Shown here in pieces: positions 2,843 through 54,300 of a DNA stretch of 64,000 bases. The position numbers and the translations under genes are program-made. The DNA comes from Lytechinus pictus (Eukaryota), in the NCBI RefSeq assembly GCF_037042905.1, contig NW_026974148.1:62001-126000 (forward strand), given 5' to 3'. Within the stretch, counting starts at the first letter, position 1, and each line of letters starts with the position of its first letter. The notes under the pieces are model-generated. The model saw only the letters and a list, made by a program, of their open reading frames with translations. It was not told the DNA's origin and did no database searches.

Positions 2843-3676
2843 TAACAAGTGCAACGCCTCTGGTAGTCTCGCCTGCATTACGCATTTCGATATAGCAGCA
2901 GTGCTTCCTTTGAAAAACAGCTAATGAATAACTATTCACACATGAAAAACTAATATGATAATAAAATATTATGTCCATTTACCCAAAATGACCTTTGACC
3001 CTTATCATGTGACCTAAGACATGTGCAAAACACGGGCAAAACAACCATTCATACTTGATTACCCTTATGTCGATGTTTCATGAGGAAGTACCATGAACTT
3101 CCCAAGGTATAATGCCAATTCAACACATACTCCCAACACGGCAAGAGTTCATTGACCTTTAAATGACCTTTGATCTCGGCCATGTTCCTGAAACACACAC
3201 AGGGTATTCAGTGATACATTGCTGCTGAGTTTCATGAACTAAATCCACAGACTTTTAAAGTTATGATGACAATTCCACAAATACCCCTAATATTACCAAA
3301 GTTTGCTGACCCTAAATGACCTTTTTACCTGGATCATGTGAGCTGAATCTAGCACAGGATTTTTAAGGATACTTGATTGCTCTTATGTCTAGGTTTCATG
3401 AACTAGATCCATAAACTTCTAAAGTTATGATGACAATTCCTAAAATAACCCCAACATGGCCAAAGTTTGTTGACCCTATGTGACCTTGACCTTAATCATG
3501 TGACGTGAAGCTCAGGCAGGATATTCAGTGGTATTTCATTACCCTATGTTCAAGTTTCATGAACTAGATCCATTACTTTCTAAGTTATGATGACATTTCA
3601 AAAACTTAACGAAGGTTATAAGATTTCAATGTTGACGTGCCTATAGTCTCGCTCTGCTATGCAGGCGAGACAAAAA
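2843..3676 (+). mobile_element. Helentron-associated (HINE-like) non-autonomous element with internal ~160-bp tandem repeats
   Basis: Sub-terminal inverted repeat GTCTCGCCTGCAT (2866-2878) / ATGCAGGCGAGAC (3659-3671); 3' hairpin GTCTCGC..GCGAGAC then an A-run; about 4 internal units containing TGACCTTTGACC and TTTCATGAACTAGATCC. Confidence 0.7.
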
Positions 3677-6600
3677 TGAAAAACGGGAAGAAAGCAGTGA
3701 CGTGACAGGCGGTGGGGCAGACTGCCCCCCCCCCTCCCCCCCCCCCCCCCCCCCGAAGGAGCTCACCAGCCATAATTATTTTAAAAAAAACGGAAATAAG
3801 GAAAAAGGGAGAAGGAAATGGGGAAATAAAAGATAGAAAAAGATGAAAAAGGGAAAAGGTGAAAAGGAAAGAAGTAAAGAAGAGGCAAAACACCAAAGGA
3901 AAGGAAGAAAATGTGAGAAAGAACAAATTCTAAATGACTGAGAAAGGGGAAATAAATGGCAAAATGTAACCGGTAATTATGGCGGGAGAATGGAATGATG
4001 GTTAAAATAAAAAACGGAATGACACGGGGAATGATGAAGTCTGATGAATTAGCCAACAGTGGTTGGTGAAACGTCGCCACTCTACAGATAATTATGAGTT
4101 TCTACTTCCAAAAAGAAAAAAAAAATCCAGTACACGATTCATAACTGATTCACTGATTCATTACTGATTATCCCTGGCTGCTATTATTTCAAGCTTTCAG
4201 CTTACGATAGTTGGCATCGGCACTTATATTTATTTTTTATTGTTGAATTATTTGTTATAGAATTATGTCTGTATCTACTTAACTACTATACAATTGTCAC
4301 CTTTGTAATTTGATAATCATGTATGTTTGATGTTATATCATTTTTAGAAATTTGCAATTTTGATTTATTAATACATGCAGAAATGCCTGCTTAAAAAAAA
4401 TGAATGAATCATAACATTCATGGATTTATTGAACTAGAAATTAGCTACCAAAAAACAAAGGAAAAGAGAACACGGCTGATATGCCGAGGATTTTATAACT
4501 AAAAAACAAGAAGAATGTGATATGGTATAGGAATATATGACTGTGTATGAAGTCTGTTATTTCGTGCAAAATAGGTGACAATAAGGACAAAAAAAATTAT
4601 CGAAATTTTAGAAGTTCTCGAGGTCGGCCTACTGCTAAAGCATTATTTTCATATCGCTCGCTCGTGACGTTTTAGAAAATTTCAAACATTTGCCACGCTG
4701 TGCCCCTCAATTAGGTTTTTATAATGCGTCTTGAGAAACATTTACCATCGATTTGATTGAATACAGTAGCCATCTTTAAAGTTTGAAATGGCTGAATCTC
4801 GAGAGGTACCAGGGTACCGGACCACACCCACAAATTAAAGATTTTGGCCCCGGGTTTCGGAATGCCCCCCTCTCCCAAGTTCTACGACACAAAGTGGAAA
4901 AAAAGACCGGAATCCTGAAAAAAAAGTTATAATGAATTAATCAGGGGCCGCGAAACGGCTTGAACGTAAGGGGGGGGGGGGGGTGACCATCCAAAAATTC
5001 AATTTCAGATGGTAATTTTTAAGTACAGGTTTGAAGCCCCCGCCCCGTTTCCCGGCGGCCTCACGCACTATAGGCTGAGCCTCCCTCCTCCCCTGCATCT
5101 ATCTCACTAATCGCGCTAGTACCGCATAGAGCATTTATGAAAAATCTGATTCACATCATATATAGGGCCGGGAAATTTTAGACTCTGCCCCCCCCCCCCC
5201 CCTGGCCTGGCCACCGCCCCCGTTACGCCCCCGAAAGAGAGAATGGGATGGCGTATGTGTATATATGAAGTCAACGCCCTCGATCAGAACAAAATATTTG
5301 GAATTTCGATAGTTTCTGGTTAGAGAAACCTCATAAACCCCTTGATGGAAAGTTAGTTTTGTCCCTAGCTATTATTAGACGTAGGCCTATGCCCCTTACA
5401 TGGTATTATGGCCACACCTTTGTAAAGCGTAAAAAAATACCAGGGTTCTGCTCCAGACCTATGTTGTAAGGGCCCTCTTATGTCTGTTGCGGGGCCCATT
5501 CATGGACCCTTCCTGGATTCAGCTTTAGGTTGAAGCTCTAGCATGGAAAGAAGGGGGAGATTCGGTTCCAAAACCAAGAAAGATAGAAAATGAAGGAGCT
5601 ATCGAAAGGAAATTAAAGGAAATATGTCGAAACATGGCGATAATTGTGATTTCCTGAAGATAATGTCAAAGTTTTCGCATAGAAGTACATTTTAGAAAAG
5701 GCAAAGTTTTCTCGTGCACGACTTTTTAGAAATTTCTTTGTTGTACCCCCCTTCATGAAATTTGTTTTTTTACGCCACTGCCTTGAAAGTAAGGGGGCTG
5801 ACCACCCCCCCCCCTTGATTTGAATTCTAATAACTGCCATATTTAGGCCCTATGTTTTGAAATGACTCAGTCTCGAGACTGCAGATTCCGTGTATAAAGG
5901 GATTGGGCCATGGTCCCCAAAGTTTTATAACCAAGCAAAAGTAGATAAGTAAGAAGAGGCCAAAGGGGACTAAATATTATTAGACTCCCTACCCCCCCCC
6001 CCCCCTGTTGCACCCCTGCCTGTTCTACAATTTTCTCAATTTTTCTTCCACCTCCACATTCCGTTAGCACCTATTATTATACATCTCAATAATTTTATTG
6101 GCACCGTCATTTTTATTTAATTTGTACTATATAAATCAAGTACAATAATTTGCTATTTTGAGCATGGATTTTTAGACATGTAGATTGCACTAATTATGAA
6201 GGGAATGTAAATAATTTGCTTAGATCACTGTGACTAAACATCTGAAACACATTACTTGTTGCTCCTTTGGGGTGTGATACGCAAATATATATATTTTTTT
6301 TCATGCTGGAAAGTCATGATGAAGACAAGATTGGAAAAATGTATAAGTAAATCATGGATAGGCAACCTAATTATCACATTTGCAAGAAATGAAATGAAAA
6401 TCTGGAATCATAGCAATAGTAGGATACTGAGCCGACTCATGATCAGCACTTCTGTATGTAAAAGAGATGTCATGATCGTTGGTGGCTCTTTCATGGTGTT
6501 GGTTAGCTTGGGGCTGCGACTTCAGGACATCTCCCACTTTGTTTCCAAAGCTATATTTAAACACGTAAACAAAGACAATCGGTTTATGATTTCGTGCATC

Positions 6601-7235
6601 AACCCCCCCCCCCCCTCCATTTTGGCTCAGCTCCCCACCAAAACTGTTCCGCGGCCCCTGCGTTCAACCATTTTGCGATTACGTAAGCATGATAAACTTG
6701 ATGGCGAGCAAAAACTCTGATGCGTCGATCAAGCATGGAGCTCCATGGATCAAGTCTAGTGTCAAGGAACAACATGAGTGGTGCGGAACTGAGGCAAAAA
6801 AGTGTGAAGGCCTGTACGTCCTCCAGCGTTGTGCAAATAAACACGTGTTTAGATTACAAGGCCCACAAATAACATACAAAGTTGATGAGACTCTATGAAA
6901 TATCTCACACACTACTTCAACAAAATACAGAGGGAAACGGCATCTTCTTTGCACATTATCCGTCGATATTCGCTTTACGTAAACAGCTTTCATAATTGAT
7001 TCCAATACGTTATGGATTCCGACTGGCATGATTTATCATCATCGGAGGATGGAAATGACATAGATGCTGCATATCTTCATTATAAAATGCACGAGGTGAG
7101 TCAGATCTTCTCATAATTATGCTACATAAAAGGATATGTTCGAAAGTAAAATGTGGTTACAAATACCAACAATTGCCGGTTCTAATTATTACGATTTTTG
7201 TTATGAGTGATAAACTGAGAGAATAACATCTAGTC

Positions 7236-7267
<32 letters not shown>

Positions 7268-7268
7268 G
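7236..7268. repeat. (GA)n microsatellite followed by poly-G
   Basis: Seen directly. Confidence 0.9.
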
Positions 7269-9972
7269 CTCTAGCGTACCTACGAGGGGGGGGGGCAGGC
7301 CCCCCTGACGAGTCACACTCCATGTAAAGGACGTATCCCTGTCCCCCCTGACGAGCTTGAAGACCTTTTTTGCCCCCCCCCCCCGACGAACGTGAAGACC
7401 TTTTTTTTTTTTTTTTTTTTTTGCTTGTCGAATTTTTTGGCGGACGGTTTTGCCCCCCCCCCCTGTGGAAAATCCTAGGTACGCTACTGGGGGGGGGGGG
7501 GGTAATTATCTGGCCCTATAGGCCTATATTGTTATAGTTACCCTTATAAAAAGCTTGCACCGAATCTAAAAGTGTTATGGGATCATGCATCCACCTAATC
7601 GTTCTTCGTGCGTACTCCGGGGGGGGGGGGGGGCAGTCGATCGACGCCTATAGCTGCATAGGGGATTTTTTTTTATCCGACAATCGCCAGAGTAACATTA
7701 CCTCCCCGCCAATCAAAACGAAGGAAAGATGTCAGATCCCCTGACTGCCGGCCCTAAAAAAAATGTTGATGAAACGCTCGATTGAGCTTTTTAATTTGCT
7801 AGATTCTAAAGCGAGAAAGTGAATGGGGATACAAATGGTCTTATCCGGTATCCCGGGCTCATAAATTTATTAGTTATCTATTATTATTTTGGTAATGATT
7901 GTTTTGCTATGTTTCATTACAAGCGCATCATAAACGTTCAAAAGAAGAAAATATAGTTTATTGACATAAGTTGGACCATGGACTTGGTCAAGGGATAGTA
8001 GTAGTTCAAGACACTGTACATATTTTTTTAATAAGAAAATGTCCCGGGGAAAATGTGAACTATCAATGGAAATGCAATGGGAGGGTCGAGGGTCGAGGGA
8101 GAAGTGAGCGAGAAACGAAATATAAAGAGGAAAATTAGATGAACAGAGAGAGGGGATGGTCGTGGTTGGAAGCCAAAAAATTAAGGGATGGTCCAACTGA
8201 AATTTAAGGATGGTCACAGGTAAAAAATTTGACACGAAAAAAAAAAGGTATCAACCAAAATTTTTGGGGGACCACAAAAATTATAGGGGGGGGGTCCACC
8301 ATAATTTTTTTTGAGGGGACGCAGCTAGGAAACAAAATTGACAAGCAAAAAATAGAAAATTTAGGGGGTCCTCCCCCCCCCCCCCACCTCAAATTTAGGG
8401 GGACAGGAAACCCGCTTCCGCCGCCTATGAGCAGGAGGATGGGGATTGGCATAAGGACAAGATGAGTAACGGTTGGAAGAATGGGTATTTTTTTAAGGGA
8501 CGCAGGAAACAAAATTGACAAGCAAAAATAGAAAATTTAGGGGTCCTCTAATGCTCCCCCTTTGAGCAGGTACTTTGCCAGCAAATTGCTTGCTGAAAAG
8601 CGGAAGAAATAGCATTTCGGGACTCAGGGAATGCCGGTATAAAAGCTCACCCGCTCTGCATGAACGGAATTAAAGAGCCAAAATGCTGTGTTACTGCAAT
8701 TAAATAAAATACCCATATATACTATAACATTTCCTGGCAAGAATGCGATTCCTATGGCCGGGAAGGGAAAAAACGGAGTAGAAAAAAGTGTGTGGGAAAC
8801 AATTAAGAAGGGAAAGGCAATTCTGAATTCATTTCCCGCGCGGAGCGCTGAAGCAAAATTTTGTTATAGGTTTTTATTATTCTTTTGACATGTTTGACAA
8901 AACAGAAAGAAAACAAACAAACAATTGAGCTATTCCATTCTTCCCTTTTCTCCCTTTTCCTTTTCATTTCTTCCCTTCCCGCCTTTTTTTCTTTTTGGGG
9001 GCGTTGGGGGGCGGCCGCCCCCCAGGCTACGCGCCTGTTTCTGCATTTCACCATCATGAATTGTAGAATAAATAAATAATAACCTATACAGGTTAGATTT
9101 TCAAAGTACGGTGTGTCGAGCATGAGGTGAATTGAGATCGAGTGATCGGTCATTGAGGAATAGTAAACAAGGCCACTCTTAGCCAAAATTCCACCCCCCC
9201 CCGCCGGACCGGTTTGTAGGTCCTATTATTATTCGTCCCATTTTCATAAAAAGAATAATATTTGTCCTCAAAATTGGATTACTGTTTTCTTTCATAATGC
9301 ACATGTAGCTGTTGCGATTTTGAAAGAAAGAGAAATAGCTAGGCCTGTCTATGTCGTGTGACTTTATTGAACTTGAGAAAATTATAAGTAACATTATTCT
9401 GGCACCTCTTTCTTCCATTTTCCGATTTCCTTCCCTATTTTATTCAAGAAAATACAAATAGTCGTAGGGGCGTGCAACAACATCTTTCCCAGAGAATTTG
9501 TACAGTATCCAAGATCCACACAAATAAGTTAGACTAGACGATACCGGCCGTCCATTGACAATTCTCGCTACCCCAAATAGGAACAAAAGTCTCATAATGC
9601 GCGAGACGAGATAATTTTCACTCCGTCGGGTCGTCATCACCACTTCCGGTTTAGAGCTACCTGCTCGCGCGAGGTTCGCGATACTGAGTTTCCACTACGC
9701 TGAAATCGATGCCAATCAGCGTAATATGTACATATTATAATACTGTTTTATTAAATTTGGTTTTTTTTCAATTTAATTTGAACTATAAATAAAAATAAAA
9801 ATATATTTTAGGTGAAAATAATTTTTATTTACGTTTTTACTCGGTAAAAAAAAAAAAAAAAAAAAATAGATATCTTAAAATTTTCGTTTAGCGACCGGCC
9901 TGACATCACGATCGTATTCGACTAGATATACACAACAGCATTCATTCCGTTCAATGTTTCGTCGACTACAAA

Positions 9973-12101
9973 ATGGATAAAAAATCAGTTTCGGAACTTA
10001 AAAAAATCTTAACTGACAGAGGAATACCGTGCAATGGAAAGCGTCGGGCAGAATTAGTGACTTTAGCAGAAAAGGCCGTTAAACTGTATCGTGAAAGAGA
10101 GGGTTGTGATCACGAACTTTCCGAGCGAAAGCGACGTTGTGTTGTTGTGGATGACGGCACTGTTGATCTGAATGGCAAAACAGTGCATTGGACTAGTGAC
10201 TTAAAGACACTGCCATCCATCACTTGTGGTGACGTTTTTGCATACTTGACGGTGGAATGTGGGTGGTCATCACAAAGACTGAAGCAACATAAATCTGATG
10301 ATGGCTATCGTATGTTTGTTGACAAACACATAGAAATGGTTGAAGTTGGAAGGATTGTTGACACCAACAATGATTTTGTGTACATTCGAGGCAAAGTCAA
10401 ACCGGAGCAGCGACACACTGCTGAGCGATATGATACATGGCTCTTGTGTTGTAGTACTGGGGAAGTAAAGTCAGCTGGTTGTGGATGTATAGCAGCGTAA
10501 GTTTGAACTTATATTAATTCATGTCATTTCGCAAGCTTGCATTTCGTACTGTCACTAGTGTCAGTCTCAGTGTCAACGATCTCCATGAATCATGGTCATG
10601 GAGGGGAGTCTGGCGCTGGCAAACCTGTCCTTTTTTAATTTTGCCACAAAAATCCTGGCATGCAAAAAACAAAAGGGGACAAACATCACTTCCATTTTTT
10701 TATTACATTTTTTTTTTTTAGTGATAATCTGATATATGACTGATGAGTGATGTGAACTTCAAAATGTGCTCATCAAATTGAATTAGAAATTTTACAAAAC
10801 AAGGCTTTTTTTAGTAATCTCATCCTACATGTAGGCTTTATAGACCTATATCATATGTTTTCAAAATCAATTTTTTAGGAATGCCATTTTGTATAGTTAT
10901 ATTGCATGTGTATAATTACCTTATCAATAAAAACTGAATAAAAAAATTAAGTATAGAATCTAGTTTTGAACATTTCACACAATTAATCTTTTCATAATTT
11001 TTGTTTGTTTATTCCTACAGGGATGCAGGGTCATGCAAGCATGTTGCTGCTTTGCTTTTCACAGTCGAGAATTTTTCATCCCGACATGTAGACAGAGGGA
11101 CAGCAGTTGGCACTGATCAGCAATGTAAGTGGAACCAGCCTCGACGTGAATCTATCCCAGTAAGAATAGCAGAGTTGGACTATCGTCACAACAAGGATAA
11201 ACCACAAAAGCATTCATGTACATCATTTAAACCAGTCTTGACGATTGACAGTGCAGCAATTTTGAAGATACGGGAGAAAATTGTGGCTTCTTGTACGACT
11301 AGTGGACATAATGCGATTGTGTTAACTTCGGTATTACCACCACCACCTAAGAACACGCCTCCATCAATCCCAGAGTTGTGTGCTCGATTCCAGTCATCAG
11401 ATGAGGAAAGCATTGTTGAATTCATCAGTCAAGCAACTTCGGATGAACATCTGGACTACTACCGCAGCCTCAGTCAAGATGATGGAGAGTGGTTGGACGC
11501 ACGAATTGGGCGCATCACTGCAAGCATTGCTGCTGACGTTCGCAGTTTGAAAGACACTTCAGAAGGGAAGACAGTGATACAGCGAGTCATGGGTACTGCA
11601 CCAAGGATCCGGACAAAAGCGATGGACTATGGTCATGCACATGAAAGTGTTGCTCGACAGATATATTCTAGTGAAATGGAAACACACCACAAGGACTTTG
11701 AATGTAACACGACAGGGTTACACCTCCTGCCAGAAGCACCATTTCTGGGAGCATCTCCAGATGGCATATCTACATGTGCATGCCATGCAAAGAGAGTTGT
11801 AGAAATCAAATGTACTCTGAAGCATAAGAATTTGTCTGTGAAAGAAATTCCAGCGATAGACCCTTCATATCATCTGGAATCTTCCAGTGGAGAAGTTTGA
11901 TTGAAGAAGACATCATCGTGGTACTTTCAGGCCCAACAACAGATGGGAGTTCTCGCGGTTGATAGGTGCGACTTTGTCATTTACACCAGAAAGGGCATCC
12001 ATGTCATTGACATTCCATTTGACCGTGTTCTGTGGGAATCACTGAAGGACAAAGCAACTCATGTTTTCTGCAAGAGAATAGTGCCATTGCTCATGAAATG
12101 A
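9973..12101 (+). pseudogene. ISL2EU accessory protein: SAP-like motif, SWIM zinc finger and YqaJ/lambda-exonuclease-like PD-(D/E)xK nuclease. Exons 9973-10496 and 11021-12101; one in-frame TGA at 11898-11900.
   Basis: LKKILTDRGIPCNGKRRAELV (SAP-like); CGC...CKH spans a GT-AG phase-2 intron (SWIM); RIGRITAS, FLGASPDG, VVEIKC and YFQAQQQM are nuclease motifs; the frame continues after the stop. Confidence 0.85.
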
Positions 12102-12987
12102 ACTTGTGTTGAAAGTTAAAACTCCATGATTGACATTCCTTATGACTGTGTTCTATGAGAATCTATGAAGGTGAAACAGACTTGTGTTTTTTATGATGCT
12201 GAGAAATGCATCTATCAAAACTAAATGTGAAATACCGTATGTGTATACCGTCATTTTTTTTCTTTCATTTTACTGGACAGTATGTACTTCGTGCTCGAGG
12301 TTCCTGTCTATTTACTGTGCTTGATTAAACTAAGACATGATGTGTTTGAATATCAATTAAATTATTTATCCACCAGTATTTTGTTACAGCTGTCATTTCC
12401 ATTCATTGCATGAATATTTATAATAACATAACATAAAATTTTGGGTGATTATGTGCGTTCATGAAATGTTAATTTCAAATCCAAAACTATGTTATGCAAA
12501 AAAAAAAATTATTTCATTTTTTGTGGGGGGGGGGGGCATCACTTGAGAGAAGTATGATTGTGTGTGAGCAAGTCTTATGTTAGTTTTGTTGGTGTGACTG
12601 CCGACTGATGTCTTTTTAATGTTTTGTGAGAAGTGTGGGTATGCATGTCTTGCTAGTGATTGTGCACGTTTTAGTTAAATATACAAAACTTACTCCAGAC
12701 TGACAAGATATATTATTACTGTCATGTACCGTTAATCACTTTGGAGTCTGTTTTGTTTGTGTGACTGTAGCATTTGGCTGACATCTATGTTTGGATTTTT
12801 ACTGAGAAGCATGTTTCTGTGTTGGTGTGCATGCCCTTGTTGAATATGCAAAACCGACTCCAGACTGACAAGATTTATGATTACCAGTGTTTTAACATTG
12901 GTCAGTTTGAAGTCTGTTTTGTTAGTGTGATTGAAAGATTAGTTTGATATCCATATGTGTGGGGTAGGTATGTACAAATATAAACAT

Positions 12988-13600
12988 TTCTTCCTCTCCC
13001 CTTCTGTCTCTCTCACCTCTACCCAGCTCTCTCTTTCTCACTCACACTCCCTGCCCCTCTCCATATACATGTACATGTATCTTTCTCTCAACTTTCCCCT
13101 ATTCCCCTCTTCTTTTTTTTTACCATTCCTCCCTTTATTTATCTCTACATATATCTCCCCCAACCCCTTCACTCTCTTTCCCCACCTTTTTTGTTTACCT
13201 TTTCTCCCTATCATTTATTTCTATATATCTTTCTTTTTCCCTCCCCTTGACCTTTTTTTTTAAATATATTCTTCCTCTCTACTCCCCCTTTTTAAAAATC
13301 TTGCTCCCTTTATTTAACTCTTTCTTTCTCACTCCCCTCTTCTTGTGTTTCATTCCCCCCCTTTCTTTTACCCTTCATTTTTTTCTATTATCTCTTTCTT
13401 TCTCCCTCCCCTCCCATCTCCTTTACTCTCCTTCTTTCTTCCCCCTCACCTTCTTTTCTATATCTTTCTCTTCCCTCCCCTATCTTTTCTTTCATCCCCT
13501 TCATGTTTTCTTCTTCTCTTCCATTTTACCACTCTCGATCTCCCTTTTCTACTTTCCTTTCCCTTGCTCCCTCCTCTCTCTTTCTTTCTCCTTTTTGTAT
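12988..13600. repeat. Pyrimidine-rich low-complexity tract between the convergent ISL2EU genes
   Basis: Almost only C and T; explains the F/L/S/P-rich spurious ORFs. Confidence 0.85.
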
Positions 13601-14134: not shown

Positions 14135-16493
14135 CTAGCAGTCTGTAATTCCCTTCCTGGGAGACGAATGAAGACGTTTCAATGGTTTCTTGCGTTTTGA
14201 TTGTCCAGATTTGGGGTCTCCATGACTGTAAAATAGGGGACCTTTCAAATTGCAAATTGCAGCGACAACCTGAACTAACATTGAAGACATATCCTTGAGA
14301 GAGTGCGGTATTTGGTGTTTCAAAATACGAAATGTTTTGATACGTTGAATCGCTCGCTCAACATGGATACGTAGTCTTGCAATGAGTCTGGTCCTATTGA
14401 TTTCTTCGACGTTCAGACGTTTTCCCTTTCCTGAGGTCCATTTTCTGGTAAAGGGCGGTGCTACCAAGGTTGAACCGACGTGCAAGAGCAGGTCTTCAAT
14501 ATGAAATCCTCTGTCTGCCATAACCTGATCCCCTTCTTCTAGTTTTTCAAGTAAACCAGAGTTCTGTGTCAAAAATTTATCCGAGACATTTCCACCCCAA
14601 AAATCACTCACAAAAGTGAATGCTCCATTGGGATTAATACCCACAAGGCACTTATAGGTATTATGACTTTTGTATTGAGAGTATGTGCGATATTGCTCCT
14701 TCTTATTTGCTGGTCTATCAATGAAGAATTATGTGCAGTCTATAACAACTCGCGTTCTTGGAAAATACTTCTTGAATTCAAATGGCATCCTACTCCTCAC
14801 TTGTAGCTGAGATGGCCAAATAAGCAGAGCTGGAACTAGGGTCTGATGTAAGTATGCGATCCAAGTTATTGTTGTTTTGGTGACACAAGTAGCACTCACG
14901 CTGAAAAGGTCGGCAAGTAACAGGAGCGGCAGGTTTAGTCTGATGCGCATTAATGTCATGACAAATTCAAAGAAAGGATCCAGATGACGTTGTTGACCTG
15001 GTTTCTTGTAACCTTTCTTCTCGTACTGCTTTTCTTTCATGCTTTCTGGTCCAGTCCAGTATTTCATCTTTGAAACTCCATCACTGATGCTATCCCAGAC
15101 ACCTGGATAGTAGAATGAAGAAAATACAGGAAAAAATAGAAAAATTAAGATTATGGAAAAAATACAATTCATTCATATATATATTTGGCTTGAAAAGAGG
15201 TAATAGAAGTGAGCAGTCATAAATGACTTAAAGAGACAAAGAGAACATCAGCTAAGAAAAATAGTATCAAGCTGAGGAAAAAAGTTAGTAATCCCATATA
15301 CATTACTTAAATCACATGTGTGTTACAGTGTTTGGATAAGTTTTCGAATGAGCTTTTTAACATTATGATTTTTGAAAAGATATTTGAACGGTTTAATTTT
15401 TTTCTCCAATAATGAAAAATAAATATGACTCACCATTCAACAGGGTTCTTGATTCAAGCCCAGTATAAAAGTTGACCCGTTCATCACTGTCGAGAACGCA
15501 GTCAACAGTATCTTCTGCTCTGCTCTTGAATTTCCTTGTTGATGCTTTCACAAGAGAAGCAATATCCTCACATGTCATGTCTGTTTGAGTTTGTACTTCC
15601 TGCACCATCGGTTTCATTTCCGCTGAAGACAAATAGTCATGTTGATCAGAATGACGCAAGTTTTCGGGAAGAGCATCCATATCTGTGAAAAACAAAAAGA
15701 GAAAGAGAATCTGATTATTAAACAGATTATCATTGAAAAATAACAAGTAACATTCATAAAAAAAGGGACCTACAATGAGCTTATTTAAATAAAGCAGTTT
15801 ATCATCATTAGATCTGGCACCGCAGACAGTACAAAGTCAAAGTAAGGGCTAAGCCAAAAGGCTCCAGATCGATGGCAAAATTAGACATTTATATCGCCAG
15901 GCATGGGCTTGGAATTTAGAATTATACTTACGTCCAACATGGCCATGATGTCCAAGAAAAGACTTTGAAGGTTTGGCCTTCTTTGACCTTGTCCTTGACT
16001 CCACCTCAACTTCACTTCCAACAGTACCGATGACATTGTCGTCTGTAGTTAGTGCAGGGTGATGCAGGGTCCCAGAAAAGACCCGGCGAGAGCTGGCTGC
16101 TTTAACCGGCGAACTGGTGGGGTCGATATCAGAGTCGGTCTGTTGCCGCTTACGAGCTGAAACTTCCCTGGCGGTGTCCATCTTGTCAATCGCTGTGGTA
16201 GGACGTTCTTCTCCAGTGAGACCGAAATTGTTCCAAAAAAAGTATCTAGGATAGCCTTTAGCATGACCATCTGGAGTAATCTGGTCTCTATCAAAATGTC
16301 TCGAACAAAGTCGCGATTTTTTTGTCAGATTAACTTTGTCCTTGCGCCGAATCAACCGCAGCCATGTCGCTCGTGTGCTGGCATCGGTGGGAAATTTCAC
16401 CCAAGTTACGTCCTTCATCCATCCCCATTTGTCAGGGTTCTTGCGCTTCGAATCATGAGCCCAGCACTGTGCGGACTCACAAAAGAAGACCAT
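14135..16493 (-). pseudogene. ISL2EU transposase: THAP domain, HTH and Harbinger-type DDE domain. Exons 16493-15932, 15682-15434, 15102-14135; one in-frame TAA at 14731-14729.
   Basis: N-terminal C-x4-C..FP..W..RLCSRHF (THAP); IDCT*, YSQYKSHNT, VMADRGF and RIHVERAI motifs; two GT-AG phase-1 introns join the frames; ORFs ending at 14729 and 14135 share a frame. Confidence 0.9.
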
Positions 16494-39388: not shown

Positions 39389-42300
39389 ATGAAGGATGGT
39401 GATGGGCCGTCAGGTTTGGAGAAAGAAGAAAAGGGGAAGGCAAAAAAGAAGGATTCCGGAGGGTATCGATGCATGGTGATGCATTGTTCGTCGACTTATG
39501 CAACCACTACTGTACATACGATGCCAGGGCCGATGCCTCGACCTGGAGGTACCGGTAGGTTTAGCTCCTACCAAATGGCATGGATCAACTTTATCAAAAG
39601 ACACCGTGTGTTCGACCACTCATGGTTGAGACATATTCATGTGTGTAGCCTGCATTTTGATCAATCACAATATGATCAGACACAGCTCAAAATGTTTGAA
39701 CTGGGACTACGTAAATTGCCTCCGAAGCTGCTGGCAAATGCCATTCCCCATATCTACAATCCTACTGCTGACCCTGCCAGTGGCAGTGGACATGGACACC
39801 GTGATGGCACCCTTCTACATGTATCTCCTAAAGTGAGATCTAACTTTAGTACTTCAACATTGGCTAGCCCTTCATGTCCTTCCGCTAATGTTGTCCCGTC
39901 TGCCTCATCATCATTGGATGATCAGGACCCAGATAGATCATCTACATTTGTTGGCCTTGAGCATGAACATGATGGTGAAGACTACTCTCACTCTCAGACT
40001 CCAGTGAGCGCAGTGTCGGCACCGCTGGAGCCAGTGGCTGGAACTGCAACTTCGCCGACCTCTCAGGATGTTCGTAGGAAACGACAACGAACTTCATATA
40101 GCCGGAAGAAAGTGAGTAAATCATTTACAATTTAATAAGGCATGTTAGGAGTCTAATAAAAAATCAGTGTATTATTTTTTTTTGTCACGATAGGTCATTT
40201 GGGCAAAAATAATTTTCAGAGTAGAATCTAGAGTAGATCTACATCTAGACTTGCCTCTCATCATTACGGGTGTCTAATGTTAGTTCCAACAATCAAATAT
40301 GGATATTTTACATGTCTAGAGCCAAATCTAGACTCATTAAATGAAACATCAATATGAGGGGGGGGGGGGTGTAATGTAGGCCTTCATATATATCTATATA
40401 TAGAGTGTGAAGCTCAACACTCAGTCATATTGGTGTATCGGTATATGGAGATCGTGGCTGGATCGTGGGCGCACGCATGGTACGTTAGGTCGTGACCTCA
40501 GTAGTGCCGCGACGGACCATGCGTGCGACCACGCCATAAGTATAAAAGCCCCGATCTTCGAGTGATTCGAGAGAGTTTTCCAGAGTTTTCCAGTCAGTTG
40601 TTTGTTCCAGTCAGTCATCAGTCAGTAATAGTACAGTCAGTAATGAGCACGTCGAGTCAAAGGACATATCTAGTGGTAGCCATCGCCCGCAGATCGGTCA
40701 TCATCAGACGCGGATCCTAAGAAGGACTGGTTCAAGGTAAACCCTCGTCTCCACTATGGCGGGCAAGGTTACTACACAATGGCGCTACGTCTAAATTCGA
40801 ACCTGCGCTGGTTTAATAATTTTATTAAAGTGATTCAGCGCTTAAAATAGCTTTCCTAAACGTAGATTTAAGTATAAAACCTATATCACTTCCAAAAAAG
40901 AAAAGGAAAAGGAAGGAAATATCGTAGCTAGTTTATTAGATAATTTTGTAGTTTTACACATAGGTCATTTTGGTTGGGACCCGCCGCCACCGTAACGATA
41001 TATCTTTTTACACAACTATTCCAAAAAAGATTAGTGTTTTAGGGTTTTAATTGCCGTTTTGTGCACCGTTTTACCCTTACACAATTCCCTTAAACCAAAA
41101 TCTGGGTGTGTCGGGACGCCACGTAAGGCACGCGGAGTTTAACAATCCATGCATATTTTCTTTTGTCCGCCGCTCCCCGCGTCTATTGTTCGTTAGTTGA
41201 GAGCGCATGCCTTGCCCGATTGTTGCTTAATTGTGGCTGATTGCGGTAGATAAATCTACCCACCCCCATTTTCCCTGACCTTTTTTATTTAAATAATAGT
41301 TAGAATTTAATTGAATTAAACTTTGGAACTGTACTAAATAAATCAATAGCTGACTTTTGCTGTTGGTGATTTTATAGACTCTCGGTGAAGGATTATTTGC
41401 TTTACCTTGCTTGTATTTTTCTCTTAAACTGGCTGGCAATATAGGATTTTATTGCAAGCTGAATATATCTCGACGTAATAATAAATTCGCGCGCCTTCCA
41501 ACAGTTAATTGCTTCCTTTAGCTTTTACGATTGGAAATTAGTTCCCGAGCGAAAGCGAGTTTGTATTAGTACATTTAATTTTTGTTTTTGGCGCCGTATA
41601 CTGTTGCCAATCTGAAGAGTAGGGATTGGGATCTCGGATCTTGGTTATATTATGAAGGATTTGTTTTTGTGCTGCGGCGACCACAAATTAAATAACATTG
41701 CCGTGCAAAGACTTAAAATTCCGTAATATTATTTATCGTTTACATTCATCTGTATTCCCGTACGTGTTACTCTTCAGATTTCGGTAACTAATTCGCCCTG
41801 AATAAATCAATTTGTTACAGTTTGAAAACCTGGTTGAAAACGGAGTTGCCCTCTTGCAAAAAAATATAAGACGGGTTTCTCGCTCCGGATATAATTTCTT
41901 AACTTATTTTTCTTGCAAATCTAAAAGAAGAAAAATAATTATTTGACGAACGCTATTGATCGTGAAATACATATGCGTCGTCGTCTTCTGGATTGTTAGA
42001 GGACGGGATTTATTGTAAACTAATTTTACCACCCATGATCACATTCTTGTCAGCAATCCATTGCGGTATCGTTTTTAGTCAGTCCACTATTACAGGCTTA
42101 ACATTTATAAATCTCAACTATATTTGATAAATGGTTCGTGCGCGTATTTTTCTGGGAATTATAAAGCTTGTTAGTTGTTATTTTTTACATTCAGGCACTC
42201 ATAATTCTCATATACACGCGCCTCTCTAACATTTCATTTCGATTAAAAAAAAAAAGAAAAGGAGGGGAGTGGAGTGAGTCAGAATTATTTATCATCTCGA

Positions 42301-45300
42301 AAGTTCATTGACTTGTTCTAATTTAGGTTGTGCATTTGCCCCTGATTTTAAGGTTGGGCTTTTTCACTCTAGTTAGATTTGTTGAATCAGGATTTAGACT
42401 TGTCAAAGGCTGGGCTTCTTGTTTAATTCGCAGACTCTCGACCAAATATATTAAACTTTCCCCTAATTAAATTTGTTTAAACATATGTTAGTACATTAGT
42501 TAGGGATTTATTTAACATTAAGGATTGCTTCCCTCACTTTAAATTTATTAGAGAATCCAATGTTTTAAACGTCTTACATGTAGTTGCCTCCCTATAGGGA
42601 TACCTTTTTTATATTCGTGGGTTCCTGTTATTAGCAAGTTTGAAATAGTAATTAGCAAAAGCAACGTTATTGCCATAATTGAGTAATTGCAAGTTGGATT
42701 TGGGGGTTTGTCCACTGAATTATTAGGATATGATAGCGTATTTCTTACTTAATTTTCAGTTTGGACTTAGCTTAAATTCCAACTGCTAATTCCGGCGGCG
42801 GTATCGCAAGTCACTCCCTCAATCCAAGCGTCGCTTAAACTTGTCTATTTCATTACAGTTAATCCAGTTATTATCTTGTAAAAATAAGTCAGGATTCATT
42901 GAAGTGAATATATTGTTTTGTTTTCTGAATTTCAGGATCGTAACTGTAAATAAATTCTGAAGATTAAGAAATTGAAGTGCGTTACTGCTGCACCGTTTTA
43001 AGAATTTGAGCAGCAATTAGATTATTTATTCATTAAAAGTGTTTGTTATATACAGTCAAGTAGACTGAGTAATATTTACCATTCATTTGGCGAGAAGACG
43101 CCTGACACAGAGCCAAGTGGGCTTCTTGATTTTGATTTAGCTCATTTATTTATTGTTGTCTTTGACAAGCAAGAGCTCATTGTCTATATCTGTATAACTT
43201 GTAAATATATATATCAAAATTCGTACCCTTAATGTACGAGGGTGTACGGGCTTTCAATTAGTGGTTATTGTATGTTCATGCCTTCACTTTATATCTGTGC
43301 ATGAATAAATTATCAATTGTAACTTTGTTTACACATTGATATTTTGGGTTGTGCACTTGTACAAACGGGATTCTGAAATTATTCAGCATCCCGATTGCTA
43401 ATTATTACATTTAAAATAGTTGTCTTTGTAAATGTTTTCAGATTGTTATCGTATGTATGAGTACACATAGCGTCCAAATTGCGTGCGTTTGCCAAAATTT
43501 GATCGCATAAATTTTTGTAAGCCTATTTGAGCGATGCGCGTTGCATAAACTATAAGCATTTCAAGTACTTGTATAAAGTGTACTCAAATTCACAAGTTGG
43601 GCATACTATTTATAATTTGTATAGTATTACATTTTGTGACTTGTGAATTCCCTTTCGCGAATTGTATCTATTCAATACCATTCGTAAAACAATTTGCGAC
43701 TTGTATTTTTGCAATTTGCAGGTTGTTCATTTGGACTCCTCTTGTAACTTATAATATTTTGTAGAGTATAGTAAAGATAACATCGTAGTATAGGTATATC
43801 AGTAGTATTGTAGGTGTAATTGTAATCTGTACACATTATCTCCGAGAGACTTAAATTACCTTTTATATGTCCCTCCTATTATTCGTGTAATCATTTTGAA
43901 TGATAATTGAAATAATATGCCTGGGACACGGGACTATGAATATTATAGTTCAAGTTCCTCCAGCGATGAATCTTCCCATACAATTGACAGGTACCATCGC
44001 TGGTGGAGTGAACGTAAAGTCTCTCGTAGATACAATAATCGTTTGGATTCCTCTGAAAGAAGGAATCCTAGGTTGATGGAAGATCGTGATCATTCCCCTC
44101 AACGTTCAAGGCATTACCGCAATGCTCGTGGCAATGCGGTAAGTCGTGACGACAGGCAAGGGGAAGAAAATAATCATAACCGAAATAGGGATTATATTGA
44201 CAGATCCCATTCGCGCCGCAATCGGAGAGATCGCTCTATTTCCCCACGACACGATTATAGGGGAAATAATTGCTATTCTAGCGAGACTCCATTGCGAGGC
44301 GAATGCGATCGTCATCGCTATGACTCATCAAGAAGCGATCATCATCATAGGTCTCCCCTCCGTCGCAGTGGTAGGTCACGTCGTGAGTCCCCATCAAAAC
44401 ATCGGGATCATCATTATAACTATTATGATAATCAATACAATTCTCCACCACAAGGCCGAGGTGATTACCATGAGTATGATTACCGAAGACACGATCCATC
44501 TCCTCCACGTCGTGGGAGACGTTATGAATCCCCACACTACTATATGGATGATTATTATTATCACGAATGTAACGAATCTCCAATCCGACGTAGGGGAGAT
44601 GATTGCGAATCCCATTCACATAGATACCGAAATCGATCTCCATCACCTTATGAAGAAAGACGGAGGGGTGAAGGTTATAGGCGGGATCCCCCGAGAGAAT
44701 CATTTTATGATTCAAGGATGCGAGGATTGGATACTCGCTCCCCTTCACCTATTCGTCGTTCTCGATCACCATATGAAGGACGGAAGGATGACGGTTTTAG
44801 TCGGTATCCTCCTCGAGAATCATTTTATGAATCAAGTAGGTGGGATGCTCGCTCTCCTTCATCCGTTCGTTACTCAGAATGGAAGGGGAAAGACCACAGG
44901 CAGTCTTCCCCTCGAAGATCTTTTCGTGATCCTCATCGGCGGAATACTCCCTCTCCTTCACCCGTCCATTCTCGAGTAAGCACTGAGTACCCTAGCACAT
45001 CTTATTCCCGGGTAAGATCGAAAGATGAAGGAAACCATGGTTTACCCCCTCGATCCTCTCATGATCATCGCAGGCGTGAGTCTTGGTCCCCTTCATTTTC
45101 TCATCATTCAGACATCGATGGGTACCCAAGTGTTTCTTCATCTTCTGAGAAATGGACAATTGAAAATTATAAACGGCTAACCCCGCAATCATTCCATGAG
45201 CGTTCGAGGGATACTCGTTTATCTTCATCTGTCCATCTTCAAGATAATAATGATGGATACCAGAGTAATAGTTGCAGATTAGTGGCATCTTCTCCAACAT

Positions 45301-48300
45301 ATGAAAATTGTGAAACCATAGACAATAATATGCCCTCTGCCACTAATACTTTCTCACTGAAGCATATCAGGGTTACCCCAGATTCAGTAGAATATAAGGG
45401 ACCGAGTGGGTTTAACTTTCCCCCTCCCTTTAAGGCTCAAACCGAAGATACTGAGGAAACTGAAGTAGAAGTTACTACTCAGTCTCTTAAACATAGGTCA
45501 ATTGAACAACGAATTCATGTTTTGGAAGACAAGATGGACTTCGTGCTTAATCGCCTACAAATCCTTAATACACTGGAGTCCTCTGTCGAAGACCTAGCCA
45601 CTCAGATTTCCAAACTTGAGCAACTAACACGAACTTCACAAGAATCAAGGGGTTCCCTTAGAACTACTCCTGAGTCTATAGAGAAGCAGACCTCTCTCAG
45701 CCAACCTAATTCCTCCCCAGTCTTGACCAAATCCTTAGAGGAGAGTATTTCAGGTAATGGATGTGAGAGGCTTGATCCTAATGAACTCGGTGACCTATAT
45801 GCTAATAAATTAGTATCCATCGAAACTGAAGAATATCAGGGAAACGATCTGGGATCGGAGGAATGGGTCCGACCCCGATCCCAATATGTAAGGACCAACA
45901 CCCACTCTCTCCCCCTGTTTCAAGTTCACATCACATAACACCTGTCCAAAATAATAATTCTTCCCGTTCAGGTAGAAGTTTTGATCTATCATTTCTTTTG
46001 GTTGAGTGTGATGAGTCGAAACAGTTGGGCCAGCAGACAACTAGGGATGCACTGGGCAAGCAAAGTAGCCCCCCATCTCACGAGGAAGGGACTCCTCTGC
46101 ATGTCCATCCATTCTCCTATGGAGATAATCCGTCATTTATGTGCACCCCTTGGCTGCTTCCTCCTTGGCCTCCACCTTAAAAAAAAAGTGGAGATGAGAG
46201 GGAGAGGGTGAAGTAGAGTAAAGTAGACAGGGATTTTATTGCAATATTACACAATTATTGTATTATTACAATCATTACATATTAGAAATATGCATAATTA
46301 TATTGCCAGTTATTTTTGTATTTGTGCTCAAAGTTATATGAATTACATCATTTATATATTTGAAGTCTGTTAAATTCTGGCACATACACATTTCATGAAA
46401 CTTCCCTCTTGCCACAAATTCCAGAATACAGTTTGAGGGGAAGGTTCTTCTGATTAGAATATAAATTTATGCTACAGATTCATGACTCTATAATTAATGT
46501 AATTCATGGTAAACATTTCAAGATTCTTATATACACAGATACCTTTTTGTAATTAATATAATTCATAGGAAATATTTGAAATGTTGCAATGAGATCCCTA
46601 ACTCACTTTATAAGAAACGTGCAGTAAAATGCTGATTTTGTAAACAAGGACTTGCCGTTTGTTGTGGCAACAATATTGTCAGCAATGTAATCTGTATACT
46701 TGGGATTGGACTTTATTTTTATGTAATATACAATATGCACATTCATCTTTTAATCAAACAGTCATACTTTGACCTTCAATACAGTCAATGAAAATTGTTT
46801 AAACGATATTATGAACGATGTGCAGGTACCAGAAGTAGATTTTCCCACCTCTTTTAAGAATACTGGAGCTAAAAGTCTGCTGACAATATAAACATTCTAA
46901 TCATAAACCATGTTGCGAAACCAGTCTGACAGCACGTTTGATTCCAAGAGGTTTTGGGTCGTCTGCTCAAGTGCATCCTCTACTGGTTTCGATCTTTGTA
47001 ATACAAACCTGCTTGAGAAGAGAACAAGAAAAACAGGGTTTGATTTGCTGAATATGCATGTATATAAAAAGGTCCTTTCTCTGTTTTTACTATTGTCCTT
47101 TTTTGCGCAGGTTTACCCTAGGAGGTTCACTATTACGTCATATTGCCATTCTGGGTATTCTCAAACATATATTGCGATAAGTTGGAATCGTATTGGAGAG
47201 GTTTACATGAAATCATGTTAATCTGACCTATTTAAATAAAAACCTTCTAAACAAATATCAATACGACAGAATTAGAATAGACCCTAAACAGTGACTTTTG
47301 GAAAATATAATTTTCATTTATATGACCGTTGTTGAACCTCATTGGGTAATCCCAGGTAACATTGTAGGCTTTCCTATACTGTCCATCTGCAACTATTATC
47401 CACACGATTATGAATGCCCTCCGGTGAGATTATGGAATAAAAACTTGTACAAGGGCATATATATATACTTTACTCATATACTGACAGATACCTAATATGT
47501 TTTCGTCAGTCAATAGTTTGTTCAGGGGGACACATTATTTACATGCCAAATGGAATAGAGGTTTTAATGGATGACACCGTGTTTAGTAATGTAATATTTT
47601 ATACCTTTTTAAATTAAATTTGATGTGTGTTTTGTTGATCGGGGATCTTTATTGGCATCATTAATTTGTAACAGGCCAAGACAAAGGTGATGTTTAATTC
47701 CCCTTTTAATCTTTTAATCTCCCCTTGGTTTTTTATGGTTGGGAGGAATATGGAGATCGTGGCTGGATCGTGGGCGCACGCATGGTACGTTAGGTCGTGA
47801 CCTCAATAGTGCCGCGACGGACCATGCGTGCGACCACGCCATAAGTATAAAAGCCCCGATCTTCGAGTGATTCGAGAGAGTTTTCCAGAGTTTTCCAGTC
47901 AGTTGTTTGTTCCAGTCAGTCATCAGTCAGTAATAGTACAGTCAGTAATGAGCACGTCGAGTCAAAGGACATATCTAGTGGTAGCCATCGCCCGCAGATC
48001 GGTCATCATCAGCAGCTTCGATACTTCGAGGACATTACCAGACGCGGATCCTAAGAAGGACTGGTTCAAGGTAAACCCTCGTCTCCACTATGGCGGGCAA
48101 GGTTACTACAGGTAAATAGACTTCTGTTGAATGCTGGTGTTCTACTTCTGACAACTTGCTTTGGTCTAAAGGAAAAGCAAATTTATTCAATTTCGGTCAG
48201 GTCTGAACAGCAGTGCTTGGGTCTGATGGGTCGTCAATTTTTTTTTTATGCCATGCCGGTGACGATATTTCCCAATTGAATAATAGGGACGTTGTATACA

Positions 48301-51300: not shown

Positions 51301-54300
51301 TTTGTCTTCTTTACAGATCTGAACCAAAGAGCCCTTTAATGCAGGAGAAGTTTATCGTGTTTGAGAGTAACCTGATGGAGCTCTTTGAAGTATGCATCTC
51401 TTGCCTTTCTAAGAATGTGCATGTGGAAAAAGTTTCTTCACAATCTTTAGGATCTGCACTGAAAGTTGTGACAACCTGCCTAGACTGTGGTCTTCGCCGG
51501 GAATGGCTCAGTCAGCCAAAGGTTGGTGACATCTACGCGGGCAACATGCTTTTGTCTGGTGCTATTCTGTTTGGAGGAAGTAGTCCCACTAAAGTGCTTC
51601 GTGTCTTGCGACACATGAATGTGAAGGCCATTACAGTGGAAACATTCATGAAACACCAGCGAGAGTACCTTCAGCCAGCAGTCATCAGAGTAGCCAAGAA
51701 GGAGCAGAGGAAGCTGATCAACGAAATTCCAGAAGGGGAGCCTCTCATCCTTGGTGGTGATGGGCAGTCTGATTCTCCGGGCCACTGTGCAAAGTATGGA
51801 TCGTACACCTTGATGGATCTCAAGAGGAACAAAATCTTGGATGTGCAATTGGTCCAGGTATGGCAAGAAATTTTCTTTTACAATTCTTTTACAATTCATA
51901 ATCAATATTTGGGTGAGTGCTATGGGAATCAAACAGATCAAATTAAACTGGCATGCATTGTTATATAGATATATGTATGCATAGCTTGAAAAAAAAGTTA
52001 TTTTTATAACTTTAAGCCACATTACTCTTTCAAAATGTATTTCTTCTACTCATAATTTTTCATTGCAAAGGGAATCAATTTGCCATTTTTTTTTCCTATC
52101 ACATTTCCTAAATTGGTATTTAAATTGTTGTTGCATCCTTATATTTTCTTACAGAGCAATGAAGTTCGCAATAGCAATGCGATGGAGTTGGAAGGTCTGG
52201 CAAGGGGACTCACTAGTCTGAAGGAGAAGGGGGTCAATATACGTATGCTGGTGACTGATAGGCACCTCCAAGTGGCTAAATGGCTCCGAGAGAATTATCC
52301 TGACATCAATCATAGATATGATGTGTGGCATATTGCGAAAGGTATGCAGGAAGTACTTTCATTTCTCATAATTATCCTTTGTTTTTATGTTTTGTTATGT
52401 ATTATGTTGAATTGAGAACAATGTCCGGTCCATTATGTTGAATTAAGAATAATTCCAGGTCCTTCCTCCATTTTCCCCTTTATTTTCAGAACATGATGGG
52501 GGGGGGGGGGCTGGGTCACCATATGCCCATCAATGAAAAATTGTATCCTCTGTAAGTAAGGTTTTCTTTCATGTTTGCTCTGATAGTAACAGTCCCTTGT
52601 GTAGAGATCATTTCTTATTGACATGCATAGATATATTGAATAAGAAACTTGGTTGAATTATCATCTTAGGTCTGAAGAAAAAGATCATCGCAGTGTCCAA
52701 GCTGAAAGATTGTGAAGTTGTTGGCAGATGGAAGCGGTCCATCAACAACCATGTTTATTGGTGCGCCTCATCAACCCCAGATGGTGATGGAGAGGTCATG
52801 GTGGCCAAGTTCAAGTCTATCCTAAATCACATGCGGAACATACATGAAAACCACAGTGACGTCTATCCTGCATGCTCTCATGGAGAGAATCATGGACAAA
52901 GAGAGTGGATGAGGCAAGGTTAGTATTGCTAGGACAGTTTTTTTGCATGTTAAGTAACATATTTAGTGAAGATTAGTGGATGCAAAACAATGATAACTGC
53001 TTGATTGCTAAAACAAACGATTACTTGCCAGTAAAATTTGCAGGGGCGATTTTAACAATTTAATGATGCCCTACCAATTTTGATAATTCAGCTTTGATGT
53101 GCAAGTAGTCAGGTTGTCACAATTTTTAGGCAGGAGAATGTGTCTTAACTTTGGTCTCCCTAAATTCAGTGTGAAAGGAATAATGTATGAACTTAAACTT
53201 GCCTACATGTACATCCAATGCTGATTTATGGTACATATGGTGTGCAGAGTGAGATTTGAATTGACTGTGATAAGAGAACATGCATGTATCATGACCTGAG
53301 AAGCGAGTCAATATCAAATGTCAATTTATTTAGCTATGCGAATTCACATAAAAAACAAGATACTGTAGATTGTGTCTTAATCGTGTCATGACGAAAAAGG
53401 GTGATGGCACAACAAATGATGACTGTGATGGGTATGCAGACTTTTATAGATATACACCATGTGTAAGTTATTTATCTAATCCTTTTCATTTTGATAATTA
53501 CAAAATAGTACATACTACATTGGATCAAAGAAGTACAGGAAGCAATGAGAATATTTTACATTTAAGTTTAACTCCTGTTTTATTTTTTAAATTCACAGGT
53601 ACGAAACCGTTTGAAAAGTTGTCTGAGGAACTATCAAAAACCAGACTGTTGAATGACATGAAGAAAATGTCTCCTGTTGACCAGACCAGTTCAGTCGAGG
53701 CCTTTCATAGTGTGATGCTCTATTGGTGTCCTAAGATGCTGGCCTACTCATATGCCGGGATGAAGTGCAGGTAAAAAAAATTGCAAGTCTATGTAGTTGA
53801 TTTTTGGGTTGAATGAGTGTGGAAATACGTGCTTGACCGAAGCGGTGATTGAAAGTAAATGGCCCTCAACCTCATTACAAAGATTTATATATTATTCTTC
53901 ATCATATTCTTGAAGAAAAGCTTTGTCATAGTTTTAATAAAATAGATTAAAGTTTTTACATATTAGTCATGATATGTCTACATGTACTGTACATGTATAA
54001 AGCCCAATAGTGATATCGTGGTAGAGAACATCTTGTACTAAAATCGATTACAGTTATTATTTTGTTTTTCTTTGTACTCTGGTTATTTGTAGATTACATC
54101 TTGCCGCCTTGCACTGGAATGAGAATGCTGGTCGAAGTCATGCAACTAAGGCAGATGGGACACCTATGTACCGTATCAATTACCCCAAAGCCAAAGAAGG
54201 CGGCCACACAGTTTCCAAAGCGTTGACAGCTTGCACATTCAGTGAGTATATTTCAACCTCCCTTCCCCTGTAAAATAATTGTTAGAAAATAGGGGGTCTT

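Follow-up and report, generated by a model that had tools for sequence, protein, structure and literature searches.

The question raised by positions 40444-48110 of a 64-kb stretch of Lytechinus pictus DNA (64,000 nucleotides of contig NW_026974148.1, hereafter the window) is whether a long terminal repeat (LTR) element without a pol gene, in which one large Arg/Ser-rich open reading frame (ORF) is open, is the damaged copy of another element or a member of a family that moves in this form and keeps its proteins under selection. The interval is a real, recently inserted pol-less LTR element. The explanation favoured here, with moderate confidence, is that it belongs to a Lytechinus-restricted non-autonomous LTR family that uses enzymes supplied in trans and has two selected frames joined by a slip junction of the gag/pol type, the first of which, ORF1, would encode an RNA-binding gag substitute or adaptor.

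A pol-less LTR family

All features of the element are on the + strand. The 5′ LTR (40444-40776, 333 bp) starts TATGG, ends ACTACA, and has a TATAAA at 40541. It is directly repeated as the 3′ LTR (47749-48110, 362 bp), and the repeat search and alignment show one substitution and one 29-bp indel between the pair. Because the 3′ LTR and the other copies have those 29 bp, the indel is a deletion in the 5′ LTR. The same 4 bp, GGTA, are present on the left (40440-40443) and on the right (48111-48114) as a target site duplication (TSD). A tRNA-type primer binding site of ~24 nt (40780-40803, TGGCGCT...) is located 3 nt past the LTR; it starts TGG, contains TGGCGCTGCGTCTA, and its 3′ end is the complement of the T-loop-like sequence GGTTCGAA. 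A polypurine tract, GGGAGGAA (47741-47748), adjoins the 3′ LTR. The near-identical LTRs, the 4-bp TSD, the primer-site-like sequence, and the polypurine tract had all been claimed in a sequence-only reading of this locus, and each is confirmed.

The primer site is kept in all five copies of the family described below, in both subfamilies, with one mismatch in the window copy, which has A for G at the 8th base compared with the four others. Since the 5′ LTR also has both the substitution and the 29-bp deletion, all of the post-insertion damage seen in the LTRs and primer site is at the 5′ end. A search of the window for tRNA genes found none.

Between the LTRs, the earlier reading had described a 3.1-kb non-coding leader, an open ORF of 673 amino acids, and ~1.5 kb of non-coding tail, with no CCHC, protease, reverse transcriptase (RT), or integrase motif. 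The AT-rich leader (40777-43916, 3140 bp, 34% GC) is indeed non-coding, its longest stop-free stretch being 76 codons, and ORF1, which encodes an orphan protein, is open for 673 codons (43917-45938). The description of the tail is correct for 46181-47748 (1.57 kb, including the polypurine tract), which is truly non-coding, but not for the first 240 bp, which are the second frame, ORF2, in the -1 frame. Up to the polypurine tract the tail (46181-47740) is AT-rich, is weakly conserved between the subfamilies, and has out-of-frame indels. No Pfam family was matched at threshold by ORF1 or by the ten longest stop-free stretches of the leader and tail. In these searches there was no protease, RT, RNase H, or integrase in the element, in agreement with the earlier reading, and gag/pol remnants in the leader and tail were rejected on the same evidence. 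The Rfam scan of the element returned chance-level matches only, and no repeats are nested inside it.

Four additional full-length copies with the identical plan were found at unrelated loci of L. variegatus and L. pictus, and the comparative statistics rest on these five: the window copy, L001 from L. variegatus (5875-13568), and L002 (6493-14206), L003 (7071-13971), and L004 (7061-14087) from L. pictus. The window element is 7667 bp long and the other family copies are 6.9-7.7 kb. LTR pairs are 98.9-100% identical (99.7% in L001, 100% in L002, 99.6% in L003, and 98.9% in L004), and four of the five copies have a 4-bp TSD of their own (GTTT for L001, ATGG for L003, and ACAC for L004), L002 having no matching TSD. 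Since the flanks are unrelated, the copies are separate insertions, and the claim that the element was recently mobile is upheld. pol is absent from all five copies; the window element is therefore not a one-off deletion, and the suggestion that sister copies might carry a normal pol can be discarded. The pol-less plan itself transposes, and it has been active recently in two species.

Two subfamilies can be recognised. Subfamily A, comprising the window copy, L001, and L002, is 85-90% identical end to end, and its exact termini, 40444 and 48110 in the window, are shared by three other subfamily A alignments. Subfamily B comprises L003 and L004, in which the LTRs and the first ~1 kb of the leader cannot be aligned with subfamily A. 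Both have LTRs that start TAT, a TATAAA box, a donor-like AAGGTAA near the LTR end, the primer site, the context of the purine tract, and the interior from 42245 through the tail in common, the shared part of the leader being 42245-43916 only. The polypurine tract of subfamily B is GGGGGGAA in an equivalent context, giving an overall pattern of GGG(A/G)GGAA. The LTR termini are not TG...CA in either case; they are TAT...ACA in subfamily A and TAT...TTA in subfamily B, and these ends are fixed because four independent target duplications delimit them.

The family was detected only in Lytechinus. Each copy is young, yet the copies differ by 10-30%, and so these differences must have built up in lineages that were still transposing. 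Divergence between the window copy and L002 is a mosaic, with 0.9% in the tail, 1.5% in the LTRs, 4.5% in the ORF, and 11% in the leader, which suggests recombination between lineages.

Selection on ORF1

ORF1 has been maintained by selection in the replicating lineages. Within subfamily A it shows 4-5% substitutions and 1-2 indels/kb, all of which are multiples of three, compared with 11-15% substitutions and 18-23 indels/kb in the leader, where 10 out of 57 indels are in-frame. Across the leader, tail, and LTRs, substitutions are 9-15% versus the 4-5% of ORF1. There are 12-23 indels/kb in the leader and tail in the two pairs involving L001, and 2-4 indels/kb in the tail of the two closest copies. 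Comparisons between the subfamilies show the same pattern, all 17 indels in ORF1 being in-frame versus 10 out of 28 in the adjacent shared leader. When the observed substitutions were placed randomly, as under neutral substitution, ORF1 stayed open in 1.3-2.8% of trials per pair (0.01-0.03).

The ratio of non-synonymous to synonymous substitution rates (dN/dS) is 0.58-0.66 for ORF1 in subfamily A. Between the subfamilies dS is 0.40 and dN is 0.25, a ratio of 0.63 (p = 2e-4), with values of 0.3-0.46 over the first 290 residues and of 0.7-1.0 over the C-terminal half. Approximately 100 columns at residues 220-423 are invariant across ten proteins from both subfamilies. The frame is open in four of the five copies; L004, the sole broken copy, is interrupted by one stop (L004:10664-10666) and also has the most diverged LTRs. 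The proposal that the ORF is under selection is therefore supported by the in-frame-only indels, the dN/dS of ~0.6, and the rarity of open frames under neutrality, and the random breakage in sister copies that had been envisaged as evidence against it is not what the copies show.

A tandem duplication within ORF1 (44633-44870, unit ~120 bp) is the best-conserved part between the subfamilies. In this duplicated part, 44644-44793 is 94% identical between subfamilies versus ~70% elsewhere, with a dS of 0.18-0.19, about half the ORF average. Here the coding constraint may be overlaid by one at the RNA level, or by gene conversion. A 277-codon ORF in the +1 frame of ORF1 (44146-44979) is open everywhere and was rejected as a composition artefact, its dN/dS being 0.9-1.1.

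ORF2 and a predicted -1 frameshift junction

ORF2 (45830-46180, 116 codons, coding to 46177) is in the -1 frame, overlaps the end of ORF1 by 109 nt, and ends ...CTPWLLPPWPPP. When all frames around the ORF1 stop were translated, the -1 frame proved to run without a stop for 116-135 codons in each of the five copies, with conserved blocks and a conserved end. Identity in this region is only ~70% between the subfamilies. For the non-overlapping part, dN/dS between the subfamilies is 0.31-0.41 (p = 0.001-0.008), the indels in ORF2 are in-frame in seven of seven cases, and the other two frames have stops in subfamily B. By these sequence comparisons ORF2 is coding and under purifying selection. 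There is no conserved ATG; near the start of ORF2, subfamily B has Val where subfamily A has Met, and this speaks against independent initiation.

A slippery heptamer, G GGA AAC (45839-45845), is located inside the overlap; the stop at which the -1 frame opens is 9 nt before it. It matches X XXY YYZ and is in the correct register, the codons in the zero frame of ORF1 being CAG GGA AAC. The heptamer is conserved in all five copies and is the sole in-frame heptamer common to them; a strict heptamer is found in the overlap by chance in ~6% of codon shuffles. A stem-loop is predicted 4-5 nt past it (45850-45883; 9 bp, a bulge, and 2 bp), and the 11 bp of this GC-rich stem pair in every copy, one change being compensatory and another a wobble. 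A pseudoknot could form between 45866-45870 of the loop and 45892-45896. The sequence GGGAAAC is the natural gag-pro slip site of simian retrovirus 1 (SRV-1), at which simple hairpins can stand in for the SRV-1 pseudoknot as the frameshift stimulator (PMC3203594). The heptamer in register, the predicted downstream stem, and the selected -1 frame without a start together have the layout of a gag/pro-pol junction. The earlier description of one ORF and no gag-pol oversimplifies the case: the conserved -1 ORF2 and the slip heptamer show that the translational layout of gag/pol has been kept.

Readthrough of the ORF1 stop was rejected, the zero frame being closed in L001, L003, and L004. In the window the zero frame is open for 90 codons past the ORF1 stop (45939-46208), and in L002 for ~88. 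In P0003, a subfamily B protein of L. pictus, it extends beyond that of L003 and L004.

The rival explanation that survives best, and which is nevertheless unlikely, is that an open frame is needed but the protein is inert. Translation of the long frame in cis would shield the genomic RNA, against nonsense-mediated decay for instance, or would couple it to packaging, and selection would act against stops and frameshifts but hardly on amino acids. The in-frame-only indels fit this explanation, and it is favoured by the overall dN/dS of 0.6, the values of 0.7-1.0 in the C-terminal half, the near-equal differences at the three codon positions (27/30/29), and the almost entirely disordered, low-complexity protein. 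It does not account for a dN/dS that is significantly below 1 and lower again in the N-terminal 290 residues, or for the ~100 invariant columns in proteins of both subfamilies. Nor does RNA protection explain why ORF2, which is past the ORF1 stop, has a dN/dS that is lower still.

The encoded proteins and their origin

Ser (16%) and Arg (15%) are prominent in the ORF1 protein, and Asp, Glu, Tyr, His, and Pro are also abundant. It is basic over residues 1-480 (isoelectric point 9.6-9.9) and acidic in the C-terminal third. In the AlphaFold model, made from a ten-sequence alignment, the mean pLDDT is 36 and the sole confident element is a helix at residues 521-578; the protein is therefore predicted to be disordered except for this one long helix, with residues 1-480 disordered. 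The ORF2 protein is Pro/Ser-rich and also predicted by modelling to be disordered, and has no word-sharing homologue, no Pfam match, and no protease or polymerase motif.

For ORF1, a profile search of the PDB was empty, and searches of Pfam and PHROGs were empty or below threshold. Among 5.8 billion clustered proteins its relatives are four Lytechinus proteins only, to which annotation pipelines give the name 'SRRM-like'. When 1.84 billion representatives were searched exhaustively with a profile, five matched, all from Lytechinus; three of these were new, and those three are from L. pictus. With the P0004 locus left out, every retrieved locus of these relatives is an element copy or a chimeric gene model. 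The Logan member P0013 (locus L005) was rejected as unrelated. In the L. pictus RefSeq models P0009 and P0011, pieces of ORF1 are fused, as the last 300 residues, to a PCM1-like protein and, as the first 123 residues, to a Delta/Serrate-type Notch ligand. Such fusions are artefacts of annotation or else genuine chimeric transcripts that run through copies of the element.

These searches bear on a second rival, that ORF1 is a captured host or foreign gene with a role outside the particle, such as interfering with host splicing, with silencing, or with the helper; this is marginally less probable than an inert protein. In its favour, ORF1 resembles no gag, its richness in Arg and Ser recalls nuclear speckle proteins, with the pipeline names to match, and it follows a leader that is long for a gag gene. 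Capture of extra ORFs is reported for LTR retrotransposons of bdelloid rotifers (PMC5408684). No host parent gene was found among the 1.84 billion representative proteins, all five matches being from Lytechinus, and the relatives with a retrievable locus are element copies, two being the chimeric PCM1-like and Delta-like models. The possibility that ORF1 is a plain retrocopy of a host serine/arginine (SR) gene, raised in the sequence-only reading, fails on the same evidence. There is no RRM, PWI, or other SR-family domain in ORF1, and a retroviral-type slip site leading into a conserved -1 frame would be unexpected in a captured cellular gene.

It is highly improbable that the copies are decaying deletion derivatives of an autonomous element, with ORFs open through youth instead of selection: all examined LTR pairs are 98.9-100% identical, leaving each copy little time to decay, but the copies differ by 10-30% through divergence that arose in replicating lineages, in which non-coding sequence gained 12-23 indels/kb in most comparisons (2-4/kb in the tail of the closest pair), mostly out of frame, while ORF1 and ORF2 gained in-frame indels only and no stops; the pol-less plan is shared by two subfamilies whose LTRs do not align and by two species, and the different flanks and different TSDs argue against segmental duplicates.

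Proposed mobilisation in trans

The element has LTRs, a primer site, a polypurine tract, and a TSD but no enzymes, and therefore reverse transcription and integration must come in trans. In the favoured explanation, the enzymes of some other, autonomous element would mobilise it. ORF1 would occupy the gag position, and ORF2 would be a remnant of the place where pro/pol would begin, or its replacement. Ribosomes would yield mostly the ORF1 protein, with a fusion of ORF1 and ORF2 as the minor product of a -1 slip at G GGA AAC. The basic, disordered, Arg/Ser-rich ORF1 protein would bind the element's own RNA, with the helix as a possible oligomerisation region, and would serve either as a gag substitute or as an adaptor bringing the element RNA into helper particles. 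The proposed role in RNA binding and packaging is drawn from composition only, the protein being basic and predicted to be disordered.

There are 21 ATGs in the leader upstream of ORF1, which makes scanning from the cap unlikely and suggests that the message is spliced or internally initiated. ORF1 might be translated from such a message through the donor-like motif in the LTR. The putative splice donor in the window, AAG/GTAAAC (40734-40742), is close to the LTR 3′ end, and subfamily B also has AAG/GTAAGC near the LTR end, despite LTRs that are otherwise unalignable. Candidate splice acceptors are present upstream of ORF1, none of them convincing.

A more specific version, rather less likely than not, is that an orphan, disordered Gag replacement and a re-used gag-pol frameshift would make up a condensate-type pair, serving to package RNA or as an adaptor, that hijacks another element's particles. 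The extended ORF1-ORF2 isoform, which ends in a proline/tryptophan-rich motif, would then belong to a protein-coding satellite in which recoding controls stoichiometry.

Several observations weigh against the favoured explanation. Mobilisation in trans is a deduction from the missing enzymes, and no helper was found. Neither Pfam nor the AlphaFold model gave a capsid-like fold, a zinc knuckle, or a gag match for ORF1, and without these hallmarks of Gag the label of gag substitute rests on position and the frameshift signal only. A dN/dS of ~0.6 represents weak constraint, and in the C-terminal half, the helix included, it is 0.7-1.0. At the junction, shuffled sequence folds as favourably as the stem (z = -0.7), and the covariation in the stem is a single pair and not significant, being equalled in 192 out of 500 shuffles; conservation of the stem could simply reflect dual coding. 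In -1 programmed frameshifting the stimulatory RNA structure is expected 5-9 nt downstream of the heptamer, and the spacer of 4-5 nt here is at the short end for such signals. Finally, L002, with its identical LTRs, is flanked by GAGA on the left and ATGT on the right; recombination between two copies or an assembly join are possible causes of this mismatch.

No RT or integrase ORF of at least 150 codons is present in the 64-kb window to provide a helper. The L001 copy sits inside another LTR element (L001:1563-15533, minus strand), whose 300-bp LTRs match each other at 100% identity and which has the ends TGT...ACA and the primer site TGGTAGTACGG... The insertion point adjoins an integrase ORF of Gypsy type (L001:4865-5974), in which the domains are Integrase_H2C2 and rve. 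This integrase was rejected as the helper, as it belongs to that different element, with its own ends and a different primer site. The Gypsy helper proposed in the earlier reading cannot be inferred, because the element has no RT or integrase to classify. Similarly, placement in Gypsy, BEL, or Copia is impossible for want of pol; the 4-bp duplication and the -1 frameshift are compatible with Gypsy but not diagnostic of it.

The surrounding window

Transposon remains are plentiful throughout the window. At 304 bp upstream of the element is an ORF of 248 codons that contains a THAP zinc-finger domain (39389-40135, +; E = 1e-7), and a second THAP ORF (15849-16493, -) is beside a Harbinger-type DDE_Tnp_4 ORF (14135-14644, -). 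Adjacent ORFs at 9973-11900 (+) contain a SAP domain (9973-10500) and a YqaJ-like viral recombinase/exonuclease (11001-11900, E = 5e-17) and are probably part of another mobile element. On the other side, an ORF at 51339-51968 (+) has a weak match to a Mutator-like transposase (E = 3e-4), below the Pfam cut-off. In addition, a tandem array at L001:17116-17950, with a unit of ~160 bp, is 72% identical to window positions 2973-3626; it looks like a satellite-like repeat shared by the two.

Comparison with known systems

Non-autonomous LTR elements have usually been seen either as non-coding (LARD and TRIM elements) or as carriers of a recognisable gag (the TR-GAG elements of plants). Here, an animal family that has been active very recently in two model sea urchins lacks enzymes yet maintains under selection a recoding signal of retroviral type together with two proteins that cannot be recognised. 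Should the proteins be needed for mobilisation, the family would show the minimum that a retroelement parasite must supply itself, and also that a gag-pol frameshift can outlive pol. There is a practical consequence for annotation, in which copies are called 'serine/arginine repetitive matrix protein-like' host genes and some are fused to PCM1-like or Delta-like models; this needs correcting.

LARD and TRIM elements are non-coding by definition, have no enzymes, and are mobilised in trans. The Lytechinus element resembles them in having no RT, integrase, or protease and in keeping the LTRs, primer binding site, and polypurine tract, and LARDs are of similar size; it differs in having two frames under purifying selection. 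Maize Bs1 and the helper-dependent transducing retroviruses are retroelements with a captured, non-canonical coding region, and where such elements are defective they depend on a helper. A non-canonical protein-coding region within a retroelement is likewise a point of resemblance to the LTR elements with extra ORFs reported from bdelloid rotifers (PMC5408684). Elements with captured ORFs have identifiable donor genes or have kept gag-pol, whereas ORF1 has no donor in the databases and is in the gag position. With the SRRM and SR proteins, ORF1 shares a richness in Arg, Ser, and RS and SP dipeptides, but it has no RRM, PWI, or other defining domain and no homology outside the Lytechinus elements. 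On this sequence evidence, its 'SRRM-like' name reflects composition only.

Close in plan are the TR-GAGs of plants, elements of less than 4 kb with a single ORF similar to the GAG of Copia or Gypsy (PMC4350172). In both, the LTRs, purine tract, and primer site are present, a reading frame occupies the gag position, pol is absent, and activity apparently continues (PMC4350172). The Lytechinus element differs in its size of 7.7 kb, its 3.1-kb leader, and its animal host, in an ORF1 without similarity to gag or a gag fold, and in having a frameshift site and a second frame.

At the junction, the likeness is to SRV-1 gag-pro, where an identical G GGA AAC is read in the zero frame shortly before the upstream ORF ends (PMC3203594, PMC2995055). 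Junctions of this type also share the overlapping -1 frame without a start of its own, and have a GC-rich stem, possibly a pseudoknot, a few nucleotides downstream, where one is predicted here. The difference is that the Lytechinus -1 frame, which would be reached by predicted frameshifting, adds ~105 residues without a protease or polymerase motif and then stops. Identity with Troyka was considered and rejected, as Troyka has 3-bp duplications and CG..CG ends (PMC12440569). In its overall plan, the Lytechinus family behaves like a gag-only non-autonomous LTR element that has kept its frameshift junction.

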